Part shown: piece by piece, positions 25,479 through 52,278 of the stretch | Layout of the letters: every line of letters begins with the position of its first letter | Numbering within the stretch: the first letter of the stretch is position 1 | Assembly (NCBI GenBank): GCA_013416795.1 | Contig: RQSC01000025.1 | Span: 1-64,000, forward strand | Origin: Prasinococcaceae sp. CCMP 1430 | Lineage: Eukaryota; Plantae; Prasinodermophyta | Direction of reading: 5' to 3' | Length of the DNA: 64,000 bases | Program-made: the position numbers and the translations under genes | Notes under the pieces: generated by a model | Database searches by the model: none | Seen by the model: only the letters and a program-made list of their open reading frames with translations | Told to the model about the DNA's origin: nothing

Positions 25479-28400
25479 CTATCGTGAGCTGCTCCTCGGC
25501 GCGTGCGTCGCTAGTGGCGTCGCCACAAGTGGCGCGCTCTTGCTTCGCCCAAAGTCTTTGCGTCGCTTGCGCGCGGGTGTGGCATGCGGCTCGCGCAGCG
25601 TTGGCACAAGGCCGCCACCATCTACTGCCGGCACACCTGCGGCGATGTCCGCGCCGTCGTTCTTGCCAGATTTCCGTTTCCGCGTGGGCTTGTCCGCCTC
25701 CTCGCGCGTCTCGTCCGCACCATATTTCTGCTTTGCCATGTTCCTCGTAATAGGTGCATCCCTTTGCACAGGCATCGCTGGCGCCCCTCGAGGTCCGATT
25801 TCGCCGCGTGACCCCGTAGGCGCGTGCTGGCGCGCCACATCCTCTGCAAGGACCTCCTGAGCCTGTTCTTGCCCCGCCTGGGTGTTGGTGCCGTCGCCTG
25901 CCTGCATCGCCCGCACGGCGCTGACGACCGAGCGATAGACATTGCCGTCGGGGCTCCTCACCTTGACGGTCTTGCGACCTTCGCTGGCACCCTTGCCGGC
26001 CTTGATCGGCTCGTAGAAGATCTCCCATCCAGGCGGCAGCTTTTCTGCACGCGCTGCACGAGGGGGCTTCGCCTTTCCTTGCCCCACCGCGAGGCGGCGC
26101 TCGTGTTCCTGCTCTTCCTTTGCTGATTGCTTCCTGCGGGGCTGCGCGGTGGTTGCGTTCGCGTTGTCGCGCGCAACTGCGGCCGTGGCATCGGGCACGA
26201 GGCGGGCATCAATGGCGCCCTGCACCACCAGCCCGTCCTGAAGGGACTTGACAAAGTGTGATCCCTCGAAGTTCCGCGAGGCGAGATGCGATCGCCCCTT
26301 TTTGGTTGCGTCGAGACCCGTCTGGTTGGTGGCGCCCTCACCTGCCTCCATCGCCCGCACGGCGCTGACGACCGAGCGGTATACAGTGCCGTTAGGACTT
26401 CTGACCTTGATGTCCTCTCGCCCTTCGGTGGCACCCTTGCCAGATTTGATCGGCTCATAGAAGATCTCCCAACCAGGCGGCAGCTTTGCCTTGAGCGTGT
26501 GCCTGCTCATCCCACGAATGCCACCCGCCCGCCGCATGCCCGAGAGGGGCCGCTCTGCGCGGCCACCCCACATGGTGGCTAGCCGACTCGTGCCTCTCAG
26601 ATCGATGCGACGGGGGGCATTGGCAACGCGGAAGCCAGCACGCGCGCGCTGCACGAACCCAGACGCGCTGTCGCGATGATCGTCGCCCGCAGTACACAGC
26701 GCAGTGCGGATTGCCGCGAAGATGGCCTTGGTCGCCATTGGGCTCACGGCGTTGGCAGCACACTCGTACAGGGTGTTCAATGGCGCGTCGAGCTTGTCAA
26801 CGTCTTCGCGGGTGAAGCCGAGGAAGCACCACGCCTCAGCGGGGGTGAGGATGCGCGCCTCGCTCCAGTGAACCACGCGCCCAACAAATCCCTGCGTTGA
26901 AAATTGCGTGGTGAAGGAGGGCGCCGGTCTGCTCGCGTACACACGTCCGAGCACAATCTTAGCGCGCGCCTCGGCCTCGGGCCCCGGCTTTTCCGCCCGG
27001 CCGATGGGGTATCTGTCGCGAACCTCGCGCGGCAGATCAGCGTACGAGCTACCGGGCGTCAGTGGCAGCGCCGCCAGCCGGCCTGTGTCAGCCTCCGAGA
27101 GCTGCCGCGGGCAGTGCGCTGGTCCCTCCTCGCCTCCCCTCCGAGGCGTACCGGCGGTGCCCAGACACGCGGTGGCCTCCGCAGCAGTTACCAGCGGCTT
27201 CAGCCACGGGACTTCGGAGTCTTCATCGCGAGCTCCATCGCGTCCATCCTTTTCGCCCTCCTGGCCAGCACTGCGCTCGCGCTCTTCCCGCTGGGACATC
27301 GCCTTGAGAACTTCCTCTCCGAGCTCGGGGTGGGTGGCCTGCTTGAAAGGGGTACGTACCGCCGCGCCTCGCAGGAATTCGCCATGATGAGTGGGCCTTG
27401 GCGGTGCTGGCATTGGCAGCCCGCAGCGGCCTGCGACCATGAAGAGGCGCTTGCGGCGCGAGGCAGCGCCGTACGCGCCGTAGTAAATGTGCCAGCTAAC
27501 TATCTGATAGCCAGACTGCAACAGCTGGCTTGCCACCGCAGCGTAGTACTCCTCGAATGTCGTGCTGAGCTCGAGCACGTTCTCCATGATGACATACGAG
27601 GGACGCAGGAGCTCCACGGCGTCGCTTAATGCGGCAACGCCCGAACGTGCCTCAAGCGCGCTGCGGCCATCCGGGTGCTGGTTCAGCGAGCTGAAACCTG
27701 GGCACGGCGGGCCGGCCGCCAAAACGAGCTCCCCGGCGAGGCTCCACTCTGCTGCCTTGAGCGCGACGGCCCCGAGACTGTCCTCGTCGAGCGCATGCGT
27801 GATCGCCGTGCGCGGAGTCGACATGGGTGCGAGCATGTCACGTTCGCTTTCGCCGCCAAGGGCCGCGTTGCACACGCGCAGTGCCCGTGCGGTCTCAACT
27901 AGGAAAGCATTGGCATCTCCGTGCCCGACGAGGCCATTCGCTGCCGACTGTGGATACAGCTGCTTGAGCACGGCGACTTGGCGAGAGTCTTTTTCTACGA
28001 ATCCGACCTTCGCGGCGTCAGCGAGCTTGCCTCCGAGTGCGCCTGAGGCCAGCCCGCCGATGCCAGCAAAAAGATCGATAATGCCGAAGCTGCTCGAGCG
28101 CGCCGCGCCCACCTCGCGAGCCGTGCACGCGCTCGCAGCCGCGTCGCCCGGAAGGTCGCTCGGTGGCCGGCCCTCCGCACGCGGCGGCTCGAGCGCACAG
28201 CGCTCGTACACCCACGCAGGCATGTCGAGCAGCGCCGCCGTGTCGTGCTCGTACAACCTGCACACGACTGCATCGACGTTTTTGGGAAGCTTGGAATCCG
28301 ATGCCACGTGAGCGGTCATGAAGGGTTTCCAAGGACGGAGCCAGCGCGCAGGTGGCAGTAGCACTTCCTCCCCAGTGACGAAATACACTGGCGCATCGCG

Positions 28401-30518
28401 CAGCGGCCGCGACTGGCGGAATAATATGGTCGCGTCGGCACGCACCACCACCAGGCACGTCCCACCACGCGTATCCTCAACGTTGACCCCCTCAGCAGAC
28501 ACCGTCGTATCGCGCGCCACCGGCGTGCCGCGACCGTTGGTACCGATTGGCAGCAGCACGTAGTGCGTCTTGCTCTCACCAGGCGGCAGGAAAGCCGCGA
28601 TGTATGGGCCGCCGTTAACGTCTGGCGGCGCGATCCGGTCGTGATGTTCAAGCACGACGTTGTCGCCGGGAAGGGGAAGCAACCCGCCCCACGCGTACGC
28701 CCCAGCTGGCATGCGCGCGGCCGACGCGCCCACCTTACTACCACCAAGCAAGAACTGCAGCAGTGAGTCATGAAGCGCCACAGTTCCGGCCCAGCCGACG
28801 TATCCCTTCTCGCGCGCGACGTCGCACCAGCGCTGCAGGGCTGCCGCTAGAAGGTCTGCTTGTTGATGCATTTTGCGCGCGACGTACTGCAAAGACCTTG
28901 CGTCGTTGGCGCCATCTGCCTCACGCGTCGGGTGACACAACGTGCGCTTCGATGGCGGAAGCGCCCAGAGTAGTGCGTTCGCGCGCGCCAGCACGATATC
29001 CCAGCTCCACGGCCACGAAGTGTCTTCGTTTTTCAGCCCCTGAGGTGGTTGGTTCGCCCCACCACCAACTCTGTCGCTGGTCGCACTGGCAGGCCTCGCA
29101 TCGCCGTCTTGAAAGTCATCGATATTGGCGTTCATGTGCGGATCATCTTCGCTCCACGTGACGTTCGGTGGGAGCGGAACGTACTCCTCTTCCCCGTTCT
29201 CACATCTTGTCACGAGCGTGAGCGCAAGCGCACCGCTACCAGTGCGGGCGAGATCCCCAGTAGCGCAGTCACCATCCACTGCAGGCAAGTTGTGCACCAC
29301 ACCCGCTCTCCAGCGCCTGCTCGGCTCGTGCCACACAAAAATCTCGGAACCGAGCGGGGGGGGCCGTTCGATCTCCGGTGGCCCCTCGAGCTGTGTCCAT
29401 CTTTCGCCCGCGTTGTGGCACACATGTTGGCCATCCTCTGGATAGAAAACGCTGTAGTAGTGCTCTTCGCGAGGTGCGTCGGGCGGCGCATGCACGTGCT
29501 GAGTGAGCCCACAGAACCACATGCAATCCCCTTCCCAATACACAGATACCCACGAACCAACCGTCGGCAGAGGGCGCTCTGCTTGCCGTTCCGCTTGAGA
29601 GGGCTCTGAAGCGTCCTCGGCCGCCCCGCCTGTGTCTGCGCGCGCGTTGTGCGATCCACCAGCCGCATCTGGGTTCGTCAGGGGCTGAGCTGCAGTCTTA
29701 TCTCCTGATAGAGGGGTCATCCTCGGTGACTCCTGCGAGACGTCGTGCGGTGTCTCTTGCCGAGGCGACCGAGCGCTCGGCAGCTCGTCGGTGCGCGGCA
29801 CCGCGCCCTCGCATCTTAGCGCGCCGCACAGTGCCCAAGCGAGATCTGCGAGCTCACCCACTCCACGTGCGACCGCCGAGGCGCCCCGCGCGGGCGGACC
29901 CGCGTGAACAATCACCTCAGCTACGCCGCTCGCCGCGGCGTCGCCACCACTGGCGCCGCCAACGCACGGGCGGGCAGCGTCCTGTCGCGCGCGCAGCACC
30001 GTCGCAGGAAATTGCACGGCATCGGCCGTGCGTGGGCAGTGAGGGGTGGCGACGAATGTCGTCGACGTGGCCGAACCATCGGAGGAGGCCGCGCTCGCGC
30101 GATCAGGTGCGAGGCGCAGCACGACCCTGTCGCTCATTCTGCCAGCCGCGCCGAGCATTGTGCGGTCTTCAGGCGCGAGCTCACCGATTAGCGCGCGGCG
30201 GGTGGCCCGCGCGACTGCGCGCTCGTTCGACGCGCGGCGGCTCTCCGCGAGCGCCGCCCCTTCCAAGGTCGACGGCAGTCCCGACGGTGCGTGCGCCGCG
30301 TCTGCCACCGTCTCCTCATCGTCGGAGCTGAGCCCCCACTCAGCGTCCCAGTCGACAAGCGTGGCCCTCAGAGGCAGCTGCGATGCGCACCCGGCGTCCT
30401 CGAGTTGCTCTGGTTGCAACACATCCAACCCACGCTCGCAGTCCCCTGCGCCTGCGGCGGCACGCTCGACCACTAGCTCGGCCAGCACACCACTCTCTCG
30501 CATCCCGGGCGCGAGCAT
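25479..30518 (-). CDS. Large DNA (cytosine-5) methyltransferase, DNMT1-superfamily-like: Tudor-like, BAH-like, catalytic domain, two MBD-like repeats; true start may lie in the N gap
   Basis: Motif I DLFAGIGG, II VEKD, IV GPPCPGFS, VI IMENV, VIII RRKRLF, PRPTH, SYADLP, GRVVHWSEARILTPAE, X ANAVSP. Confidence 0.9.
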   Translation of the reverse strand: MLAPGMRESGVLAELVVERAAAGAGDCERGLDVLQPEQLEDAGCASQLPLRATLVDWDAEWGLSSDDEETVADAAHAPSGLPSTLEGAALAESRRASNERAVARATRRALIGELAPEDRTMLGAAGRMSDRVVLRLAPDRASAASSDGSATSTTFVATPHCPRTADAVQFPATVLRARQDAARPCVGGASGGDAAASGVAEVIVHAGPPARGASAVARGVGELADLAWALCGALRCEGAVPRTDELPSARSPRQETPHDVSQESPRMTPLSGDKTAAQPLTNPDAAGGSHNARADTGGAAEDASEPSQAERQAERPLPTVGSWVSVYWEGDCMWFCGLTQHVHAPPDAPREEHYYSVFYPEDGQHVCHNAGERWTQLEGPPEIERPPPLGSEIFVWHEPSRRWRAGVVHNLPAVDGDCATGDLARTGSGALALTLVTRCENGEEEYVPLPPNVTWSEDDPHMNANIDDFQDGDARPASATSDRVGGGANQPPQGLKNEDTSWPWSWDIVLARANALLWALPPSKRTLCHPTREADGANDARSLQYVARKMHQQADLLAAALQRWCDVAREKGYVGWAGTVALHDSLLQFLLGGSKVGASAARMPAGAYAWGGLLPLPGDNVVLEHHDRIAPPDVNGGPYIAAFLPPGESKTHYVLLPIGTNGRGTPVARDTTVSAEGVNVEDTRGGTCLVVVRADATILFRQSRPLRDAPVYFVTGEEVLLPPARWLRPWKPFMTAHVASDSKLPKNVDAVVCRLYEHDTAALLDMPAWVYERCALEPPRAEGRPPSDLPGDAAASACTAREVGAARSSSFGIIDLFAGIGGLASGALGGKLADAAKVGFVEKDSRQVAVLKQLYPQSAANGLVGHGDANAFLVETARALRVCNAALGGESERDMLAPMSTPRTAITHALDEDSLGAVALKAAEWSLAGELVLAAGPPCPGFSSLNQHPDGRSALEARSGVAALSDAVELLRPSYVIMENVLELSTTFEEYYAAVASQLLQSGYQIVSWHIYYGAYGAASRRKRLFMVAGRCGLPMPAPPRPTHHGEFLRGAAVRTPFKQATHPELGEEVLKAMSQREERERSAGQEGEKDGRDGARDEDSEVPWLKPLVTAAEATACLGTAGTPRRGGEEGPAHCPRQLSEADTGRLAALPLTPGSSYADLPREVRDRYPIGRAEKPGPEAEARAKIVLGRVYASRPAPSFTTQFSTQGFVGRVVHWSEARILTPAEAWCFLGFTREDVDKLDAPLNTLYECAANAVSPMATKAIFAAIRTALCTAGDDHRDSASGFVQRARAGFRVANAPRRIDLRGTSRLATMWGGRAERPLSGMRRAGGIRGMSRHTLKAKLPPGWEIFYEPIKSGKGATEGREDIKVRSPNGTVYRSVVSAVRAMEAGEGATNQTGLDATKKGRSHLASRNFEGSHFVKSLQDGLVVQGAIDARLVPDATAAVARDNANATTAQPRRKQSAKEEQEHERRLAVGQGKAKPPRAARAEKLPPGWEIFYEPIKAGKGASEGRKTVKVRSPDGNVYRSVVSAVRAMQAGDGTNTQAGQEQAQEVLAEDVARQHAPTGSRGEIGPRGAPAMPVQRDAPITRNMAKQKYGADETREEADKPTRKRKSGKNDGADIAAGVPAVDGGGLVPTLREPHATPARKRRKDFGRSKSAPLVATPLATHAPRSSSR
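25896..26042 (-). repeat. MBD-like repeat copy 2 inside the DNMT CDS
   Basis: KLPPGWEIFYEPIKAGKGASEGRKTVKVRSPDGNVYRSVVSAVRAMQAG; highly similar to copy 1 in DNA, offset 444 nt. Confidence 0.7.
26340..26486 (-). repeat. MBD-like repeat copy 1 inside the DNMT CDS
   Basis: KLPPGWEIFYEPIKSGKGATEGREDIKVRSPNGTVYRSVVSAVRAMEAG. Confidence 0.7.
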
Positions 30519-30650
30519 CCTGTCCCGGCGACCGGTACCCAGCCGGCGCCCGGGCGATGCGCGCGCGCCCCCCTGCTCCGTTGGCCCCCTCTCCACCCCC
30601 CCTGGGCGTCCCTCCTCAGCAGCGCGCGCGCGCCCCGCCGCGCCGCGGCC

Positions 30651-30727
30651 NNNNNNNNNNNNNNNNNNNNNNNNNNNNNNNNNNNNNNNNNNNNNNNNNN
30701 NNNNNNNNNNNNNNNNNNNNNNNNNNN
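30651..30727. other. Assembly gap (77 N)
   Basis: N run between the divergent DNMT and START-like genes. Confidence 1.
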
Positions 30728-30850
30728 CGGCGCGGGCGCGAGGCCGCGCCACACCGCGCCGCGCCGCGGCGCGTGGGGGGAAAGGCCCAGCGGCGGCTCG
30801 GGCGGCGAGCGAGAAGCGGGGAAAGGAGGGGGGAGGCGGAGCGGCGCGCC

Positions 30851-31978: not shown

Positions 31979-32986
31979 TCACGCGTCCTTGGTTGCAACT
32001 AGTTGGGTGCACTCCTTCTGGCGCTCCTCCTCCGTGGGCGTGCCTATCACGGGGTAGCGATGGTGCTTGCCTGTTCCGGCGCGCACGACGCGCATACCCG
32101 GCACCGCCTCGACAGCCGCTGCGAGGAGCTCCGGCGCGATGAGGTGGAAGCCCGTGGGCTGGCGCAGCGATGCAGCGCGCGCGATGCCCTCGTCCATGCC
32201 CAGGCCAATCTGCCAATCGAACACCAGCTCACGCACGTTGAATATGCCCCCGTGGATTTCGCACTCCCCCGGCCAGCGCGCGCCGGCCTTCACGTTGGCG
32301 TCGTACGTCCGTCGGAACGCCGCGCCAGGGCGCGTCCGACTGACGGCAAAGTAAATTGAGGGGGCAGCCGCCGTGACGACGAGCGTACCGCCGGGTGCGA
32401 GCAACGACGCGAGCGCGCGGCAGCTCGCTTCGATTTGCGGCCCGCTCAGAAAGTGGAAGACCTCCGAGACCAAAATCGACGAGAACGTGCCGTGCTTGGC
32501 GACCAGGTCGGCCTCGGCGAGATTATCAGGCAGCCGGCCGAATGCGGTGGACACCACATCGGTCAGCTCAGCCTCCGCGGCGCCGGCCATCACCTCATCT
32601 AGATGGCGCGTGTCACAGTCAAGAGCAACCACGTGCGCGCCGGTTCCGCGCAGCGCACGCGCGGCCAGAAACACGTTGGCACCAAAGGCGCATCCGACAT
32701 CGAGCATCGGCCGCCGATGGCCCAGCCTCGCCGAGCCGTCGATCCACTCACGCAGGAGCGGCGAGCTACCAAACTGGAACCCGCCTGTGTTGAGCGTAGC
32801 GCGGACCTCGTCGTTGCCTACGTTGAGGTCCATCGCCGCGTCGAAGCTCGCGTCGCCCACGGCGACACGCGCGGAAGGGTGTTGCGCAGCCGACGCGAGG
32901 CCGCGCGCGCCGCGCCGGGACACGCTCGCAGCAGCCGCTGCCCCGGCCGCGGCCACACGGCGCACCAACCCCGTCGCCCCCGGCAT
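31979..32986 (-). CDS. Class I SAM-dependent methyltransferase with organellar targeting-like N-terminus
   Basis: MLDVGCAFG, VVALDCD, EVFHFL, LAPGGTLVV; R/A/S-rich presequence. Confidence 0.85.
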   Translation of the reverse strand: MPGATGLVRRVAAAGAAAAASVSRRGARGLASAAQHPSARVAVGDASFDAAMDLNVGNDEVRATLNTGGFQFGSSPLLREWIDGSARLGHRRPMLDVGCAFGANVFLAARALRGTGAHVVALDCDTRHLDEVMAGAAEAELTDVVSTAFGRLPDNLAEADLVAKHGTFSSILVSEVFHFLSGPQIEASCRALASLLAPGGTLVVTAAAPSIYFAVSRTRPGAAFRRTYDANVKAGARWPGECEIHGGIFNVRELVFDWQIGLGMDEGIARAASLRQPTGFHLIAPELLAAAVEAVPGMRVVRAGTGKHHRYPVIGTPTEEERQKECTQLVATKDA

Positions 32987-33561
32987 CACTCCAGAGGGCT
33001 TCGACCTCGCCGCACGCGCGCACGCAGTGTCGCACTCCCCATCGCCCCCGCGCTCACCGCGCGCGCTCGGGAGGGGAAGGGGAGGGGCGCCCGCCGCCGC
33101 GACCGCGCGCGCCGCGCGCGGCCGCTGCCAGAATGCGCGCCGGTCCGAGGCTCGTCGGGCTGCTGCCACTCGGCAGTCCTGCCAGCCCACGTTTTTTCCG
33201 CGTAGGCCTACGCGTCTCGAGAGTGCACGCCGGGCGCAATCCACTTTTCCACCTCGCTATGCATAATTGATTCCGATGCATTTTCCGGATCTAATTTCGG
33301 TCCTCGATGATCCCGGTTTTCGGAGGCGCAATATGCGGATCAAGAGAGGCCCACCTGGCGTGTGCCGCGTGCGAGCCGCCGCGCTCCCAGGGGGAGCGGC
33401 GCGGCGCGCCGCGCAGCGGCGCGATGGCAGGAGTGGTCTGGTCGCCAAAGCATTGGTCACTTAGGCTCTCCACGCATGCGCCCGCTACCCGCAGAGGCCA
33501 TGCCGCGGCCTGAAAGCACCAAGGAAAGCAAACGAAGGAAGTCGTTGCCCGAGCAGCGTGC

Positions 33562-34911
33562 TCACGCGTTGTCCACCCTTGGCCTCTTCGCAGCCGGCTG
33601 CGCCGTGGCATCCTCGACGCTCGCGTCGTCCGGGTGCGCGTCTGACGTCGTGGGGCGCTCCGCATGCGAGGAGCCGCGCAACTCGGTCGCACGCATGCCC
33701 ATCATCGGCGATGGTGTGAGGCTTTGGCGGATGTTGAAGCTCGATCCTCGAAACCCCTGCCGCTGCCACGCGTCCAGGGCGCACACGAACCGGCTCATGG
33801 TCGTCGCCGTCACATTCCCGGCCACCAGCTCGTCGCGGTCGTCCTCATCGCGCCCCGCCCCCTTGTCCGCCGATGTGTCCGCCTCCTCCGCCACCGTGCA
33901 CGCCTCCTTCGCGCCACCAGCCCGCTCCGCATCCCCGTCCGCCTCTTCCTCAGCGTCCTCTGGCTCGTCTGGTAGCTGCGGCAGGTCCAGCAGCGTCGGC
34001 TTCTCGGTGCTGGACACGACTGCACCACTCGACTGCAGATTCTCGACGGTGTCCTTCACGTTCCTGATGAGGCGCTGCAGCTGCCGCGTGGCCCAGAAGG
34101 GCTGCTTCTTTATCTTGGCGAGGAACTTGTCTTGTAGCTTGGCCTTGGTGAGCTTGTCGTGCTTTTTGAGGATCTTGACGAGCGCCAGGTAGTTGAGCAT
34201 CGAGTAGTTGTCCAGGAGCACCAGCTCGGCGTGCAGCTCGATGAGCCCACGCTCCGTTTCTGTGTACGCCTCGCGGTTCGCGGCGCGGTTGTTGCTATCG
34301 TCCTCCATGAGCACCTTCGCTTGCGCGGAAAGGTGACCAAGCAGAATGATATAGTCCTCCTCCTGCCGATCGCGCGCGGCGCGGCGAGAGAGCGCGCGCG
34401 TCACGAGGCGTGGGGGCACGGCCATGTCAGCACTTGCGCCGGACTCTTCGCCCGCGCCGGCGGTGCTGACGAGGGCGCGCGTGCGCATCTGACGCGTTCA
34501 CAAGGCGCCCACGCCAACACATGCGCGCCATCGACGCCGCGAGGGTAGCCTGTCCGCGATCCAGTGGCCAGCACAACTCTCGCGCGCACACGGCTGCGCG
34601 GCCGCCGCCCGCACTAGCCCGTGCAGCGCTGCGCGGGGCGAGCCAGCCCAGCGGCAGTGCAAGCCGCGGCGACGGCGGCGCGCACCACGCACTTTGTCGA
34701 CGAAAAACTTGTCCATCTTGTTGACCTCCCCCACGAGCACCTTGCAGAACTCCTCCTCTAGCGCGTGCATCTCCTCAGCGGTGAGGCTCTGGACGCCCTC
34801 GGACTCGAGCCGGCCGAGGATCTTCTTCAGCGACTTGTACGAGAGGAACGCGGCCGACCAGTCGGGATGGACCTCCTCGACGACGGTCACCAGGTGCTTG
34901 CCGAACTTCAT
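33562..34911 (-). CDS. SPX-only protein (phosphate/inositol pyrophosphate sensor); intron 34363-34692
   Basis: MKFGKHL, LSYKSLKK, EVNKMDKFF, LLDNYSMLNYLALVKILKKHDK, QPFW; binding-site Tyr/Lys residues intact. Confidence 0.93.
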
Positions 34912-35217
34912 GACGAATGGCCGGCGTGGGATGTGCAGTGTCGCGCAGCGGCACCGGCGCGCGCCTCCCGCCACTCGGCCCTGCCCCCAACGCCCCCCCC
35001 TCCCGGCTGCCCGCACGCAGGCACGCCCGCGGCCGCCGGCGCGTCGCGGGTCCCCGCGCGCAAACGCGGACGCCCTCACCCGTCTTCTCCCCCCCCCTCC
35101 CTCTCCCTCCGCCTCGCGGCTTCCCCGCGGGGCCGCTCGCGGCAGGCCCGGCTTTGTGCCAGCAGCTCCGGGCGGCACCGACGGCGCGGGAGACGGGTGT
35201 GGCGCCCTTGCCCCCCC

Positions 35218-35231
35218 NNNNNNNNNNNNNN
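35218..35231. other. Assembly gap (14 N)
   Basis: N run upstream of the SPX gene. Confidence 1.
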
Positions 35232-35492
35232 GCCCGCCGCGCGCGCCCGCCGCGCGCGCGCCGCGCGCGCGCGCGAACACTTTTCTTGAACCCTGCATCA
35301 AAACCGTAATCACGTCCGCCGCCGCGCCCCCATCCGCGAGGGGCATCTTTCTCCGCCGGGCGGGGGCATCTTCCATCCGCGCGGGGGTATCTCAGTCAGT
35401 CCCACGCAAAACCTCATCACGCGGGGACCGCACAATGCCTGAGATCAATTATACATGTAATAGCACCACGGGCGACTTGATCATACAACCCC

Positions 35493-35507
35493 AACCCTAA
35501 ATGGGCC
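35493..35507 (+). promoter_or_regulatory. Telo-box-like AACCCTAAA directly followed by site-II-like TGGGCC
   Basis: Sequence match in the SPX/MYB-CC divergent intergenic region; function not shown. Confidence 0.4.
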
Positions 35508-35964
35508 TCATCGCGGCCTGCCGCCGCCCGGACGGACGGTGCGTTTCGACCACGCCGCGCCGCCGCGGTTTGGGGTTGGCGCCGCGACGGACGCAGACCC
35601 TACGTCGCCCCCGCCTCCGCGCGAAACGACGGAACGAAAAACGGAAGGAAAGGAGCTTCGGGGGCGCGGGCGCGGGAGAACGGCGGACGGTGCGCTCTCA
35701 ACTACCCATTCGCACTTGGTATCAGATACGCGGGAGTGCGTACGAAATGCGAGCGAAATGCGTTCCGGGGAACGGGCGCTCGGCGAGCGGGGCGCGCGGG
35801 CGCGCGGCGCACCGCAGGATTCCTCCGCCGAAAAAGCGCGCCTGGAAGATTCCCGGTTGCGGGTCTGTGCGGCTGTTGGCGGATCCGCGCGCGCGCGCGC
35901 GCGGCGCCGCGGGCGAAAGTGCGATTTGATTGGGCGCGCCGCGCGCGCGCGGGCGGGCCGCGCG

Positions 35965-36005
35965 NNNNNNNNNNNNNNNNNNNNNNNNNNNNNNNNNNNN
36001 NNNNN
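35965..36005. other. Assembly gap (41 N)
   Basis: N run upstream of the MYB-CC gene. Confidence 1.
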
Positions 36006-36228
36006 AAGATCGGCGGCGGCGGGCGCACGCCGGAGCCATCGGCGGGCGCGGGGGCGCGTGAAGAACGGTGCAGCGCGCGCACGGCGTGGGCGCTGGCCGG
36101 GCGCGATCTCGTGCGGCAAGCGCTGCCCAACTCCGTCGGGGCGGGCCAGGGGGATCGGAGGACGGCCGACGATGCACACGCTGGATGCGAGGCACAGGTA
36201 GCCAGCGGTCCGTCTGCGACGGCGGTGC

Positions 36229-37992
36229 ATGGCGGCATCTGACAGCGACTCCCTGGATGCTATCCTTGCCCAGTTCCCGCTTGGCGACTGGGACGCGCCC
36301 GTCGAGGCCGATGACGCGCTCCATACCCTGGGCGACGCGCTAGACGACATGCAGCACCCATGGGGCATTCTCAGCGTGGGCGGCGGAGTAGGAGATCTAG
36401 GGGGGATGCAGCAGCAGCCGCCTCAGCCCCAGCAGCACTTGCAGCACTTGCAGCACCACCAGCAGCACCAGGCGTATGCGGGCGGCGCGACGGGCATCGT
36501 GCCGCCGCCGCCGTTGAGCTTTGCTGGCGGTGGCGGGGCGCATGCGTCGCAGCAGCACGGGGGGCTAGAAATCGGACGGGAGGGAGCACATTCGGCAGGG
36601 CAGTCTGCGGCGCACGCGCAGGCGGCGATGCAGCAGGTGACTAGGGGCGTGGCCGTAGCTGCCTCTGTCGGCACCGGCGCGCACGGCAGCCAGCACCCAA
36701 GCACGGCAGCACCTGCTCTGTCGTACGAGGGGCAGCAGACCCAAGCGGCGGTGGCCAGCGCGACCGCCGCTGGGGGGCATCTCAGCCCCGAGCAGGTGCA
36801 GCACCTCAGCGCGCTCCAGTGGCAGATGATGCGCGCGAATTCGCAAGACGCCAGGAGCCCGTACCACGGCGCGTCGCAGGCGTTGCATTCGCCATACAGT
36901 GCCGGTATCCTGTCCGCGCAAGGGGCTCCGCAGGGAGCGTCGCCTGTGGCCGGCGCCGCAGTGGACGGCGTACCGCCGGGCATGTACATGCCTCCCCCGC
37001 AGCGTCCGGGCGAAGCCGGTGCGCACCAGCCAGGCATGCCGGCGCAGCTCGCCCAAGGCGGCGCGAGCAGCCTCGCTGCGCCTCAGCCCATCTCGGGTGT
37101 GGCCGTCGCTCCCGGTGCTGCGCATCAAGATGCCGGCGCCGGTCGTGGCACGCGGCCAGGGCCGACCGCCCAGAAGAAACGCATGCGCTGGACCCCCGAG
37201 CTGCACGAGAAGTTCGTGGAGGTCGTTGGGAAGCTTGGTGGCCCCGACAGCGCGACGCCGAAAGTTATCCTCACCATGATGGGCGCTGAAGGACTGACCA
37301 TCTTCCACGTGAAGAGTCACCTCCAAAAGTACCGCATGAGCGCTCAGGCGAATGGTGGGGCGGGCGGCGGGAAGGCGTCCAAGGGCGGTCAGGGCGGCGC
37401 CGCGGCAAAGGCCACCAAGGCCTCGGGCGGCAGGTCCGGCGGCGCAAGCAGGTCCGGGGCAGCCAAGGACAGGACCGGCAGCAGAGCATCAGGTGCCACT
37501 AAGAGAGGCAGTCGCCGCGCGGCGGCGGCGGCCGACAAACAAGCGAGCACGCCGCCAGAAGCCGCTGCGGCCGCCGCCGCTGCGGCAGCGGCGACCGCCA
37601 CTATCGCGTCAGCGGCGCCTGCTGCTACCTCTGCACCAGAGTCCGGTGACGCGCTGCTGCAGGCTGATCTTGCTGCGACAGATGAGGGCATTCTGGCAAG
37701 CGCACCTGCCCCCACCGTTGCGGACGACGTGAGCGTCGAGGAGGCGCTGAAGCAGCAGATGGAAATGCAGAAGCGCTTGCACGAACAGCTGGAGGCTCAG
37801 CGCCAGCGTACGCTGACGCTTCTGCAGCGCGTCATGGAGGAGAAACGCAACAAGGTGGCTGCTAGCAGCGGTGGTGCGGTCGACGTGGCCGCGGCAGCAG
37901 CAGCAGCAGTAGAAGACATGGATCCCGCGACGGCTGAACTTCTGGCTGCGACCGGAATGGGCAAGTACGTCGAGGAGCTAAAGGACAGGTAG
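36229..37992 (+). CDS. PHR1/PSR1-type MYB-CC (GARP) transcription factor
   Basis: [14 protein letters not shown]...LGG...ATPK...[14 protein letters not shown] and coiled coil [16 protein letters not shown]. Confidence 0.93.
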
Positions 37993-45492: not shown

Positions 45493-47018
45493 TCATCTCG
45501 CATAAAACGTCGAGAGCGAGTCGGCGTCGCCTACCCACCTGAAGTGCCAAGGCTCGTAGTCGACGCCGGCCTCGTTGCCGCGTGGGAAGCTAAGCTCGAA
45601 GTGGTACCTCGCGGCATTGCGCTGTAGCCAAGCGTACGCACGCGTGCGCTCGAAGCTGTGGGCCACGAGGTGCGCAGATGGGACGTCCGCGTCTCCGATG
45701 TCAACGGCGTAGCCTGTGTGGTGCTCGGAGAAGCCGGGCGGTGCTGACACGCGCGCGCGCTCGCCAGCGGCCTGCATTCTAGCCGCCTTCGTGCCAAAAA
45801 AGAGCGCCTCCTGGTCTTTGATCGACCGGAAGGTGGACAGGGGGACCAGGTACACGCCGTCGCTTCGGGCCATGTCCTGCATGGTCAGGAAGTCGCGCGC
45901 CGCCCCGTGCCGCATGCGCTCCGTGCCGCAGCCGGTCACAGGCGTCAGGTCGGCCGCGCGAGCCTCCTGCTGCCGCCTGTGGCCCATGATACTCTGGACC
46001 GATCCCTGCGTCCCCGCCGCCGCCGCACCTGCGGTGACCGCGTTGCGGAGCGGGCGCTGCGGATCTGCTTGCGCAGCATTCCATGCCCAGCCAGCAAAGC
46101 CAGCGCAAAGCGCAGCGCATCCCAACGCGACCATTCTGCCGCCGTCGTCGGTCGAGCTGCGGCCACCCGCCCCACGGCGGGCAAGAGAGCCAGCGCGCGT
46201 CGCCTCGTGGATGCGGATGGGTGCCGCCGGGGACCTTCCCGCGGCCGCACCTCCACTCGAACGACGCCCCCGCGACGGCATGTCCACTGTGCCCCGGGTC
46301 TCGGGCGCAGCACCGTTCGCGTCGCCATTGGCGGGCAGCGGCGAATCCTCGACCGGCGGGCTGCTCTGCAGCCTCCGCTGCTGCATCTGCCACTCGAGCT
46401 TCTCCGCCTGGGCGGCCCGCTGCTTCTCCGCCTGAGCGGCCCGCTGCCCCTCGCGGCCGCCCCCACGTCGCCGCCCACTGTAGGCGGGTTCGTCCGCTGG
46501 CGGCGCCATGGTCACCTCAGCTGCGCCGGACGCGGCGGCAGTGCTCGCGACCTCGTCCGCGAGCACTGAGCCAAGCCTCTTGGCCATGCTTGACGCGCCC
46601 GCCGTGCTGCCATTGGGACGCTCCACGCGGCCGTTGACGCCATTGGCATCCCTCCGTGCACCGCCTTCCCCGCGCACGCCCTCAGGCCTGGCCGCGCCGC
46701 CACGCTCGGCGCGCGAGTCACTGATGGTCTCCCGCAGCCGATCATTTGCTCCGCCGCCGCCGCCGCCGCCGAAGCGCACGCGCTTCGCCTGCGCGCGCGC
46801 GGCTCGCCTGCGTGAGAGTCGCCCCCCCCCGTCGCGCCGCGCCACAAACAGCCGCCGCCAGCGCCTCGCCCCCCCTCGCCCCGCTCCGCCGCAGGCGCAA
46901 CCGCCCGCCCCTTTGGCCGTACCTTGTACTCCTTTGCGGCGGCCGCGCCGGCGACGGCCGCGAGCAGCAGCGCTGCCGCTGCGAGCAGCGGCTGCGGCCC
47001 GTTCTTTCGCCGCCCCAT
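45493..47018 (-). CDS. VanY-type D-alanyl-D-alanine carboxypeptidase (peptidase M15B) after a long linker and TM segment; intron 46789-46922
   Basis: STFRS, SAPPGFSEHHTGYAVD (SxHxxGxAxD), WLQRNAARYHF, YEPWHFRWVG (ExxH). Confidence 0.88.
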
Positions 47019-47823
47019 GGCGACGCTTCCCTCTCGGCGCGGCGCGGCGCGCGAGGAGGGGGGGGGGAAGCTCGGCCGGGGCTGCACGCGCTCCGCGCGC
47101 GCTCTGCCTCGCCTCCGCGACAGCGCCTGCGGCAGCGCCGGCAAACGGCGCCGATCGAAAGCCCGGCGGAGCACAGCCAAAACCACCCACCCGATCAAAA
47201 ACGGCGCCAACTCGACCGACCCCGGAGAGAAAAAAAAAGGGGGGAACCCGCCGAACCACCGAAGGAACGACCCGGGGCGCCTGCGCATGCGCACGCATGC
47301 TTGCGATTGTTGTTGTTTGCTGGTTGTTTGTTGTTGCTGTGAGTCCGATTTTTCGGGTCGGGATTTGAATGTGGGTTTGATTGCGATTGCGATTGCTTGT
47401 TGATTGGATGTTATTGGAAGGAGATGCAGCGGAAACGCGCGGCTGTTGACCTGTTGTGAGAAGCTGTCTGTCTGTCTGTCTCTCTGTTGTCGGTCGGTCG
47501 GCGCCGGCCGGCGTTTTTTTTGTATTCTTTTCCGGGTTGGCGGGGCGCTTCGTCGGGTCGTTTTCGGTGCGAGGGACGGGCGGGCGCGCGGGGCGGCGCG
47601 CGCCCGCGGAACGCATCATCCGGTCTACGCGCTGCCTAACCCTGATTTTCCTTCTTGGTACCAGGGTAAATTAGGGGCCACCCACGGACAGACACGGGCT
47701 GTCGGCGGGATTGATTTCGGAGCGGGCCGGCCTGGCCGCGCGCACGCTACCAGCCAGTCGGCGCGCGCGCGCTGCAGCGCAGTCTTGAGAGAGGGGAGGG
47801 AACCGTGGCGGCAGCGGGGCGCG

Positions 47824-51786: not shown

Positions 51787-52278
51787 NNNNNNNNNNNNNN
51801 NNNNNNNNNNNNNNNNNNNNNNNNNNNNNNNNNNNNNNNNNNNNNNNNNNNNNNNNNNNNNNNNNNNNNNNNNNNNNNNNNNNNNNNNNNNNNNNNNNNN
51901 NNNNNNNNNNNNNNNNNNNNNNNNNNNNNNNNNNNNNNNNNNNNNNNNNNNNNNNNNNNNNNNNNNNNNNNNNNNNNNNNNNNNNNNNNNNNNNNNNNNN
52001 NNNNNNNNNNNNNNNNNNNNNNNNNNNNNNNNNNNNNNNNNNNNNNNNNNNNNNNNNNNNNNNNNNNNNNNNNNNNNNNNNNNNNNNNNNNNNNNNNNNN
52101 NNNNNNNNNNNNNNNNNNNNNNNNNNNNNNNNNNNNNNNNNNNNNNNNNNNNNNNNNNNNNNNNNNNNNNNNNNNNNNNNNNNNNNNNNNNNNNNNNNNN
52201 NNNNNNNNNNNNNNNNNNNNNNNNNNNNNNNNNNNNNNNNNNNNNNNNNNNNNNNNNNNNNNNNNNNNNNNNNNNNNN
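51787..52278. other. Assembly gap (492 N)
   Basis: N run covering the 5' ends of the aminotransferase and rhodanese genes. Confidence 1.

Follow-up and report, generated by a model that had tools for sequence, protein, structure and literature searches.

We analysed a stretch of 64,000 nucleotides (nt) from the prasinodermophyte alga Prasinococcaceae sp. CCMP 1430 (assembly GCA_013416795.1, contig RQSC01000025.1, positions 1 to 64,000), here called the window, which carries on its minus strand a gene for a DNA methyltransferase (DNMT) of very rare predicted architecture. An active-looking C5 cytosine methyltransferase domain of the DNMT1 type, in the broad sense, is followed in the same polypeptide of 1,679 amino acids (aa) by two repeats that very probably adopt the fold of methyl-CpG-binding domains (MBD), and is preceded by a region with a putative Tudor-like barrel. 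Word searches of 5.8 billion proteins, made with the whole protein and with its catalytic region, returned two clusters of the right length at 90% clustering, both from marine metagenomes: P0001, which is 99% identical to the window protein, and P0002, which shows 48% identity overall and the same order of parts with one MBD only. The source contigs of P0002 have a GC content of 72% and carry eukaryotic genes such as Sec5 alongside.

Coding integrity of the gene

The open reading frame (ORF) extends from 25479 to 30752 on the minus strand, to which all coordinates of the gene and its parts given below refer, and its first ATG is at 30518. The coding sequence (25479..30518) comprises 1,679 codons plus stop in a single ORF that does not require an intron. 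This frame contains no internal stop, while each of the remaining five frames has 22–38 stops over the same 5 kb and a longest open stretch of at most 274 codons. GC contents at the first, second and third codon position are about 0.70, 0.52 and 0.70–0.84 and stay constant from the catalytic domain through the two linkers and the two repeats to the end of the tail. Furthermore, strain variants from 13 or more independent assemblies (metagenome or Logan) have the ORF unbroken. Two Tara Oceans metagenome scaffolds bear the gene together with the neighbours it has in the window, and scaffold L001 is 98.5% identical to the window across 15 kb. The DNMT gene is real and intact, and is most probably a single intronless nuclear gene. 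The window has a GC content of about 67% and contains several runs of N. An "orphan" DNMT borne by a virus or a transposable element was considered and rejected, since the GC content of the gene equals that of its surroundings and identical neighbours occur in independent scaffolds.

The catalytic domain

A first reading of the DNA, made from the sequence alone (the sequence-only reading), had given the same coordinates for the coding sequence and had listed the main motifs of C5 cytosine methyltransferases. Every one of them was located, and the set is complete and in canonical order. The domain spans aa 805–1275 (26694..28106), as delimited by motifs, Pfam and matches in the Protein Data Bank (PDB), and includes motif I FAGIGG (aa 817, 28053–28070), motif IV PPCPGFS (aa 937, 27690–27710), motif VI ENV (aa 979, 27576–27584), motif VIII RRKR (aa 1021, 27447–27458), PTHH (aa 1042) and motif X ANAVSP (aa 1255, 26739–26756). 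The spacers that separate motif I from IV and motif VIII from IX are long. The Pfam family DNA_methylase (PF00145) matched with E values of 1e-16 to 1e-18 (61.7–67.8 bits at a cut-off of 22) and is the sole Pfam family above its cut-off across the entire protein.

In comparisons with solved structures the catalytic domain itself matched only enzymes of the DNMT1/MET1 type, DIM-2 and the chromomethylase ZMET2. A profile built from the clade gave its best values against MET1/DNMT1-type structures (E 1e-29) and DIM-2 (E 4e-27), followed by ZMET2 (E 4e-18), a bacterial enzyme (E 2e-15) and DNMT2 (E 2e-8); neither DNMT3 nor DNMT5 was among its best 60 PDB matches. Judged by these matches, the catalytic core is of the DNMT1/MET1/DIM-2 type in the broad sense, and the domain looks like an intact, active C5 methyltransferase.

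Two C-terminal repeats with a predicted MBD fold

Behind motif X the protein contains two near-identical repeats, at the places given by the sequence-only reading. The first (aa 1346–1395, 26334..26483) is separated from the catalytic domain by an in-frame linker that is partly conserved in P0002 (aa 1276–1345, 26484..26693). A charged, fast-evolving linker (aa 1396–1493, 26040..26333) leads to the second repeat (aa 1494–1543, 25890..26039), a lineage-specific duplicate that is missing from P0002. The two copies share 82% protein identity over 50 aa and about 84% DNA identity over about 172 nt, and by this alignment their similarity is far above chance.

When a single repeat was compared to PDB sequences, 26 of the 29 matches were MBDs (best E 0.033), including MBD2, MBD3, MeCP2, MBD1, MBD4 and Arabidopsis MBD6. 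An AlphaFold model of the repeat, calculated from the three available copies, reached a mean predicted local distance difference test (pLDDT) score of 76.7 and consists of strands followed by a helix. Foldseek searches of the PDB with this model yielded MBDs for all of the best 35 matches, with E values from 6.6e-4, probabilities of 0.97–1.0, identities of 30–40% and a root mean square deviation of about 2–3 Å in the shorter alignments (about 45–52 columns), and below these 35 the scores collapsed to unrelated proteins. On the basis of these models and matches the repeats very probably adopt the MBD fold, which as a prediction we regard as established. The identification of the repeats as MBDs by the sequence-only reading is thus borne out for the fold and not for family membership as scored by Pfam, whose MBD profile (PF01429) matched neither the whole protein nor either isolated repeat.

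Two other assignments were considered. The start "KLPPGWE" resembles a Pin1-type WW domain over about 13 residues, but the second Trp and the Pro are missing and the fold search returned MBDs only; a WW domain was therefore rejected. Both repeats match the Pfam family DUF7028 weakly (E 0.02, below the cut-off), and no paper mentioning this family was found.

Positions of the canonical methyl-CpG contacts

MBD2 contacts methyl-CpG (mCpG) by R166 (Arg finger 1), D176, Y178 and R188 (Arg finger 2). At the position of Arg finger 1, copy 1 and P0002 have a Ser with a Lys directly preceding it, and copy 2 has an Ala. The Asp contact is retained in copy 1 and P0002 and is a Thr in copy 2. The Tyr contact is replaced by Lys in all three domains, and Arg finger 2, within "YRS", is retained in all three. 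From the alignment to MBD2 and the alignment of the repeats, two of the four canonical contacts are retained in copy 1 and one of four in copy 2. The remark of the sequence-only reading that the first Arg is replaced in "PIKSG" and the "RS" arginine kept was correct, with Ser or Ala following the Lys and the Arg of YRS present.

The invariant basic residues of the repeat alignment are K23, R32, K36, R38 and R46, and strand alignment to known MBDs would place all of them on the DNA-facing strand. The MBD-fold modules are likely to bind DNA. From the residues present we would not expect them to recognise mCpG in the canonical, symmetric manner. Selectivity for methylated DNA of any kind, in which the half-site reading of hemimethylated sites discussed below is included, is conceivable, but we lean against it.

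Selection and age of the fusion

The first MBD is the slowest-evolving segment of the protein. Compared to P0002 it shows 0.12 nonsynonymous (dN) and 1.10 synonymous (dS) substitutions per site, whereas dN is 0.33 for the catalytic domain and 0.4–0.8 for the remaining segments. Between repeat 1 and repeat 2 of the window dN is 0.094 and dS 0.48. With dN/dS at about 0.2, purifying selection has acted on both MBD copies ever since they arose. Since the methyltransferase and a single MBD are shared with P0002, the fusion is older than the split of the two organisms and the MBD duplication younger.

When the last 344 aa of the protein were used for a word search, P0020 (300 aa) was the sole match. 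In this sequence the P0002 C-terminus follows 402 nt that are unrelated, on a single Tara contig of 2.6 kb, L004, which agrees with the contig of the P0002 locus, L002 (13773), only from nt 403, six codons before the MBD. L004 is probably a chimeric assembly, with a rearranged allele as the alternative, and P0020 was not accepted as a stand-alone MBD protein.

Position among DNMT families

HMMER, run in full against 1.84 billion representatives, returned 1,888 matches at E ≤0.001. Only P0002 was covered over the full length; the other sequences of the family, P0020 and the short P0023, are fragments. The next complete proteins, P0019, P0021, P0022 and P0024, combine a PHD finger with a methyltransferase. 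Alignment to these four enzymes by hhalign (probability 100%, E 4e-47) covered aa 638–1271, so that the homology includes some 170 aa upstream of the catalytic domain. The pre-catalytic module defined in this way (aa 638–804, 28107..28607) is common to the PHD-finger DNMTs and is not detectably a BAH domain. From raphidophyte algae, "DNMT1-like" enzymes that combine PHD and DNMT domains are known (PMC9998398).

A tree was calculated from 31 sequences without named reference enzymes and is in this form a limited test of placement relative to the DNMT1 clade. In the tree, the window protein and P0002 group together (support 99) as sister to the four PHD-finger methyltransferases (support 97), on a long branch and apart from the groups with BAH and methyltransferase and with DUF7893, BAH and methyltransferase (DIM-2-like). 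By these comparisons the window protein and P0002 appear to form a small separate clade adjoining the PHD-finger DNMTs.

BAH and replication-foci (RFD) domains characterise DNMT1 enzymes, and BAH is retained even in CMT and DIM-2 (PMC12344493). A BAH-like segment had been assigned upstream of the catalytic domain by the sequence-only reading. This could not be upheld: neither the whole protein nor the isolated pre-catalytic segment matched BAH in Pfam at E up to 10, phmmer found no PDB sequence match for aa 607–800, comparison by hhalign with the aligned BAH domains of eight related DNMTs had a probability of 0.3%, and the AlphaFold (AF2) model of aa 300–810 lent no support. Pfam did not match RFD (PF12047), Chromo or SNF2/helicase domains in the protein either, and the same library detects RFD in 5 of 84 related DNMTs and Chromo in one. 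As neither BAH nor RFD is detectable, we do not take the enzyme for an orthologue of DNMT1, and the tree did not place it inside the DNMT1 clade. The label "DNMT1-like" therefore suits the catalytic core and not the whole protein, whose nearest relatives are PHD-finger DNMTs. Two further identities were rejected, that of a CMT for the missing chromodomain and that of a DNMT5, given that SNF2 is not found, the Phe in PPCPGFS is retained and no DNMT5 is among the best PDB matches.

Accessory domains were surveyed in the approximately 99 long proteins among the best 150 of the 1,888 HMMER matches. BAH was found in more than 50 of them, DUF7893 in about 50, RFD in five, PHD in four and Chromo in one, and neither MBD nor Tudor domains occurred in any of them. 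Scanning the 150 best matches for motifs and searching locally with a profile likewise revealed no further MBD-bearing DNMT, and two scans of Joint Genome Institute (JGI) metagenomes gave no further relatives. The architecture, which the sequence-only reading did not recognise, appears indeed to be very rare in the databases searched. The fusion of a DNMT to an MBD as such has a precedent, since some DNMT5b enzymes are reported to have N-terminal methyl-CpG-binding and Tudor domains (PMC9998398); a DNMT1-type core with a C-terminal MBD differs from these.

The N-terminal region and the tail

Two Tudor-like segments had been proposed by the sequence-only reading in the N-terminal half, of which the first found some support. 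For this segment (aa ~318–380, 29379..29567) the aromatic residues of VYW..D, WF.G and FYPEDG align with the Tudor domain of Arabidopsis RDM15, which binds H3K4me1 and was its one PDB sequence match (7de9, E 0.36). Its part of the AF2 model has five strands with a local pLDDT of 63–74 in an otherwise poor model. The best 50 Foldseek matches of this part were all Tudor domains, at E values of at least 0.0096, and 7de9 was among them (target TM-score (TMt) 0.75, E 0.017). Pfam gave no Tudor match in the protein. These signals are slight though consistent, and the presence of a Tudor-like barrel at aa ~320–380 is weakly suggested by the model. The second segment (aa ~388–452, 29163..29357) is a sequence pattern conserved in P0002, for which no PDB match was obtained and AF2 gave four strands of low confidence; it was not supported.

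The preceding region (aa 1–299, 29622..30518) is rich in Ala, Gly and Arg, is poorly conserved (dN 0.58 against P0002, with many gaps) and has no Pfam match. At the other end, the tail behind the second repeat (aa 1544–1679, 25482..25889) also has no Pfam match and shows Lys/Arg clusters which by eye resemble nuclear localisation signals.

Directly upstream of the DNMT start the window contains a run of 77 N (30651–30727), and in 30519–30650 the GC content is 0.82–0.89 at every codon position. The three fetched contigs that bear the gene (L001, L007 and L008) each stop 70–160 nt upstream of it. Perhaps a repeat or extreme GC content at this site breaks assemblies.

Possible role of the MBD-fold modules

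As the best explanation of the protein as a whole we propose, with moderate confidence, an enzyme of Tudor-like, DNMT1-type and MBD parts that is tethered to its substrate chromatin. The clade would share a plan in which the chromatin reader at the N-terminus varies (a PHD finger in the relatives, Tudor-like here) and is followed by the common pre-catalytic module and the methyltransferase. The lineage would have gained an MBD-fold domain behind motif X, and the window species would have duplicated it. From sequence and models we infer an active nuclear enzyme: the Tudor-like part would read histones by docking on a modified tail, the Lys/Arg clusters of the C-terminus may act as nuclear localisation signals, and the MBD-fold modules would bind DNA and keep the enzyme on its substrate chromatin. 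The likeliest target would be CpG DNA that is already methylated, for which the modules would then have a preference, and the outcome would be local maintenance or spreading of methylation.

Several observations weigh against this explanation. Both copies lack Arg finger 1 and the Tyr, copy 2 lacks the Asp in addition, and replacement of the equivalent Arg in MeCP2 abolishes binding of methylated DNA. Nor is such binding a property of every MBD fold: several domains of this fold, among them MBD5/6 and many from plants, lack it. The functions suggested by the sequence-only reading, a plausible self-reinforcement or a sensing of hemimethylated DNA, are weakened by the lost contact residues. Besides the missing Pfam MBD match, a profile of the three repeats did not improve the comparison with the PDB (best E 0.14 against 0.033 for the single sequence). 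The Tudor domain has weak support, and for the N-terminal half AF2 produced a poor model (mean pLDDT 35.5 for aa 300–810), too poor also to judge a BAH fold. The contigs found to carry the gene are all genomic and none is a transcript. Finally, the observed/expected ratio of CpG is about 1.2 throughout the window (1–64000) and that of TpA about 0.5; CpG is not depleted and hence the deamination footprint of heavy methylation is not seen, which neither proves nor excludes methylation.

The lost contacts bear directly on the question whether the modules read methylation. They might instead be unspecific DNA clamps that provide processivity, or protein-interaction modules as the MBD folds of MBD3 in NuRD and of MBD5/6 with PR-DUB are, and the N-terminal reader alone would then target the enzyme. 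Two of the four canonical contacts lost in copy 1 and three of four in copy 2 would agree with this, as would the failure of the Pfam MBD profile and a Lys/Arg-rich surface that suits unspecific binding of the DNA backbone. Nevertheless, we consider such a role rather unlikely, as none of the three copies has lost Arg finger 2 or its "RS" context, the ancestral copy retains the Asp, and the low dN over the whole small domain suits a precise recognition surface more than a generic clamp. The selective retention of one of the two symmetric Arg fingers in every copy also allows a different idea, in which the single finger reads one 5-methylcytosine-G pair and senses hemimethylated CpG (or mCpH), acting in cis like the SRA domain of UHRF1, with two copies providing avidity. 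The maintenance-type core of the DNMT1 superfamily, combined with no detected RFD, which is the link of DNMT1 to UHRF1 and replication, would fit half-site reading, and so would the duplication of the domain and the conservation of both copies. However, this idea is purely inferential, the methyl-reading Tyr is lost too, and we know of no MBD that prefers hemimethylated DNA. It appears quite improbable.

Either role presumes that the repeats belong to the methyltransferase polypeptide. If the repeat region were a separate downstream gene, or were untranslated and open by chance in GC-rich DNA, there would be no fusion to explain. In favour of this, the contigs found are genomic throughout, in-frame ATGs are present at aa 1316, 1328 and 1337 shortly ahead of MBD 1, and in L004, from which a protein of 300 aa was called, the P0002-type MBD region has unrelated sequence upstream of it. 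Yet 1,679 codons without a stop, when other frames have 22–38, and a uniform codon-position GC argue for one coding unit. Frame, order and linker are kept in P0002 at 48% identity, the ORF is unbroken in the 13 or more assemblies, and the one 2.6-kb contig L004 is most simply chimeric. We regard a separate or untranslated repeat region as very improbable and keep the chromatin-tethered fusion enzyme as the preferred explanation.

Neighbouring genes in the window

About 1.5 kb upstream of the DNMT gene and on the same strand, an ORF at 31979–33244 (−) encodes a class-I S-adenosylmethionine (SAM) methyltransferase of 421 aa (Methyltransf_12/25) without evident link to it. An SPX domain is split across two adjacent ORFs on the minus strand, its N-terminal part at 34498–35376, where a run of 14 N is located (35218–35231), and its C-terminal part at 33562–34488. 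Head-to-head with these lies an ORF with Myb and Myb_CC_LHEQLE domains of the PSR1/PHR1 type (36229–37992, +). From these domain matches, a predicted phosphate-starvation regulator and its usual SPX partner stand side by side at 33562–37992. An ORF of 708 aa at 45493–47619 (−) has a C-terminal VanY D-Ala-D-Ala carboxypeptidase domain (E 2e-40) in eukaryotic context, possibly a relic of plastid peptidoglycan metabolism. An amine oxidase is also among the neighbours. Judged by its neighbours, above all the SPX, Myb-CC and VanY genes, the DNMT gene is that of a eukaryote, most likely a green alga. GC content drops markedly at one place of the window only (0.59, 52–54 kb), next to a run of 492 N (51787–52278).

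Implications and comparison with known systems

Maintenance or spreading of DNA methylation usually depends on a separate reader that recruits the writer, as in UHRF1 with DNMT1 and in readers of H3K9me with CMT or DIM-2, or on an ATPase-coupled sensor as in DNMT5. In the window protein a DNMT1-type catalytic domain is followed on the same chain by an MBD fold, which is more strongly conserved than any other segment. Should the modules bind DNA that is methylated or hemimethylated, the enzyme would be a minimal read-write system in one polypeptide, a model for work in vitro and possibly a compact scaffold for epigenome editing. If they do not, they would be a strongly constrained example of an MBD fold given another role. 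If half-site reading were true, it would be a new specificity of the MBD fold and a new solution to maintenance, in which newly replicated DNA is found independently of UHRF1. In each case, a small clade of Tudor/PHD-DNMTs from marine algae is added to the diversity of eukaryotic DNMTs.

The best match of the catalytic core is to DNMT1/MET1 (E 1e-29), and these are likewise large multidomain proteins, with chromatin-reading parts N-terminal to the methyltransferase where the window protein has the putative Tudor-like barrel. In contrast to them, RFD, CXXC and BAH are undetected here, putative readers also follow the catalytic domain, and the protein branches with the PHD-DNMTs. With the PHD-finger DNMTs of microalgae (raphidophytes, PMC9998398; P0019, P0021, P0022 and P0024) it has the pre-catalytic module, the methyltransferase and motifs in the region of the target recognition domain in common; those enzymes have a PHD finger in place of the Tudor-like region and end just after motif X, without an MBD. 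The DNMT5b enzymes of diatoms and haptophytes resemble the window protein in the reported fusion to methyl-CpG-binding and Tudor domains, to the latter of which the putative Tudor-like barrel would correspond, and in the long spacers between catalytic motifs. They differ in the N-terminal position of the MBD, a C-terminal SNF2 ATPase and a DNMT5-type core with a Phe-to-Ser exchange (PMC9998398), whereas the window DNMT keeps the Phe (PPCPGFS), has no SNF2 that could be found and has a DNMT1-type core.

The repeats share with MBD2, MBD3 and MeCP2 the predicted fold, the LPxGW start, the motif "SPxG..[FY]RS" and the C-terminal helix, and they deviate by the exchange of Arg finger 1 for Ser or Ala and of the Tyr for Lys, by the loss of the Asp in copy 2 and by scores below the Pfam threshold. 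For the Tudor-like part, the Tudor domain of RDM15 (PDS5C, 7de9) offers aligned aromatic residues and a top structural match; the similarity is weak and the ligand specificity not transferable. Tudor structures of SETDB1 are also among the Foldseek matches of this barrel, and SETDB1 is comparable as a writer that combines Tudor and MBD with a methyltransferase in one chain (for the MBD in SETDB1/2: bioRxiv 10.1101/2021.11.30.470311). It modifies histone lysine by a SET domain and has all its readers N-terminal, so that the two enzymes are analogous and not homologous.

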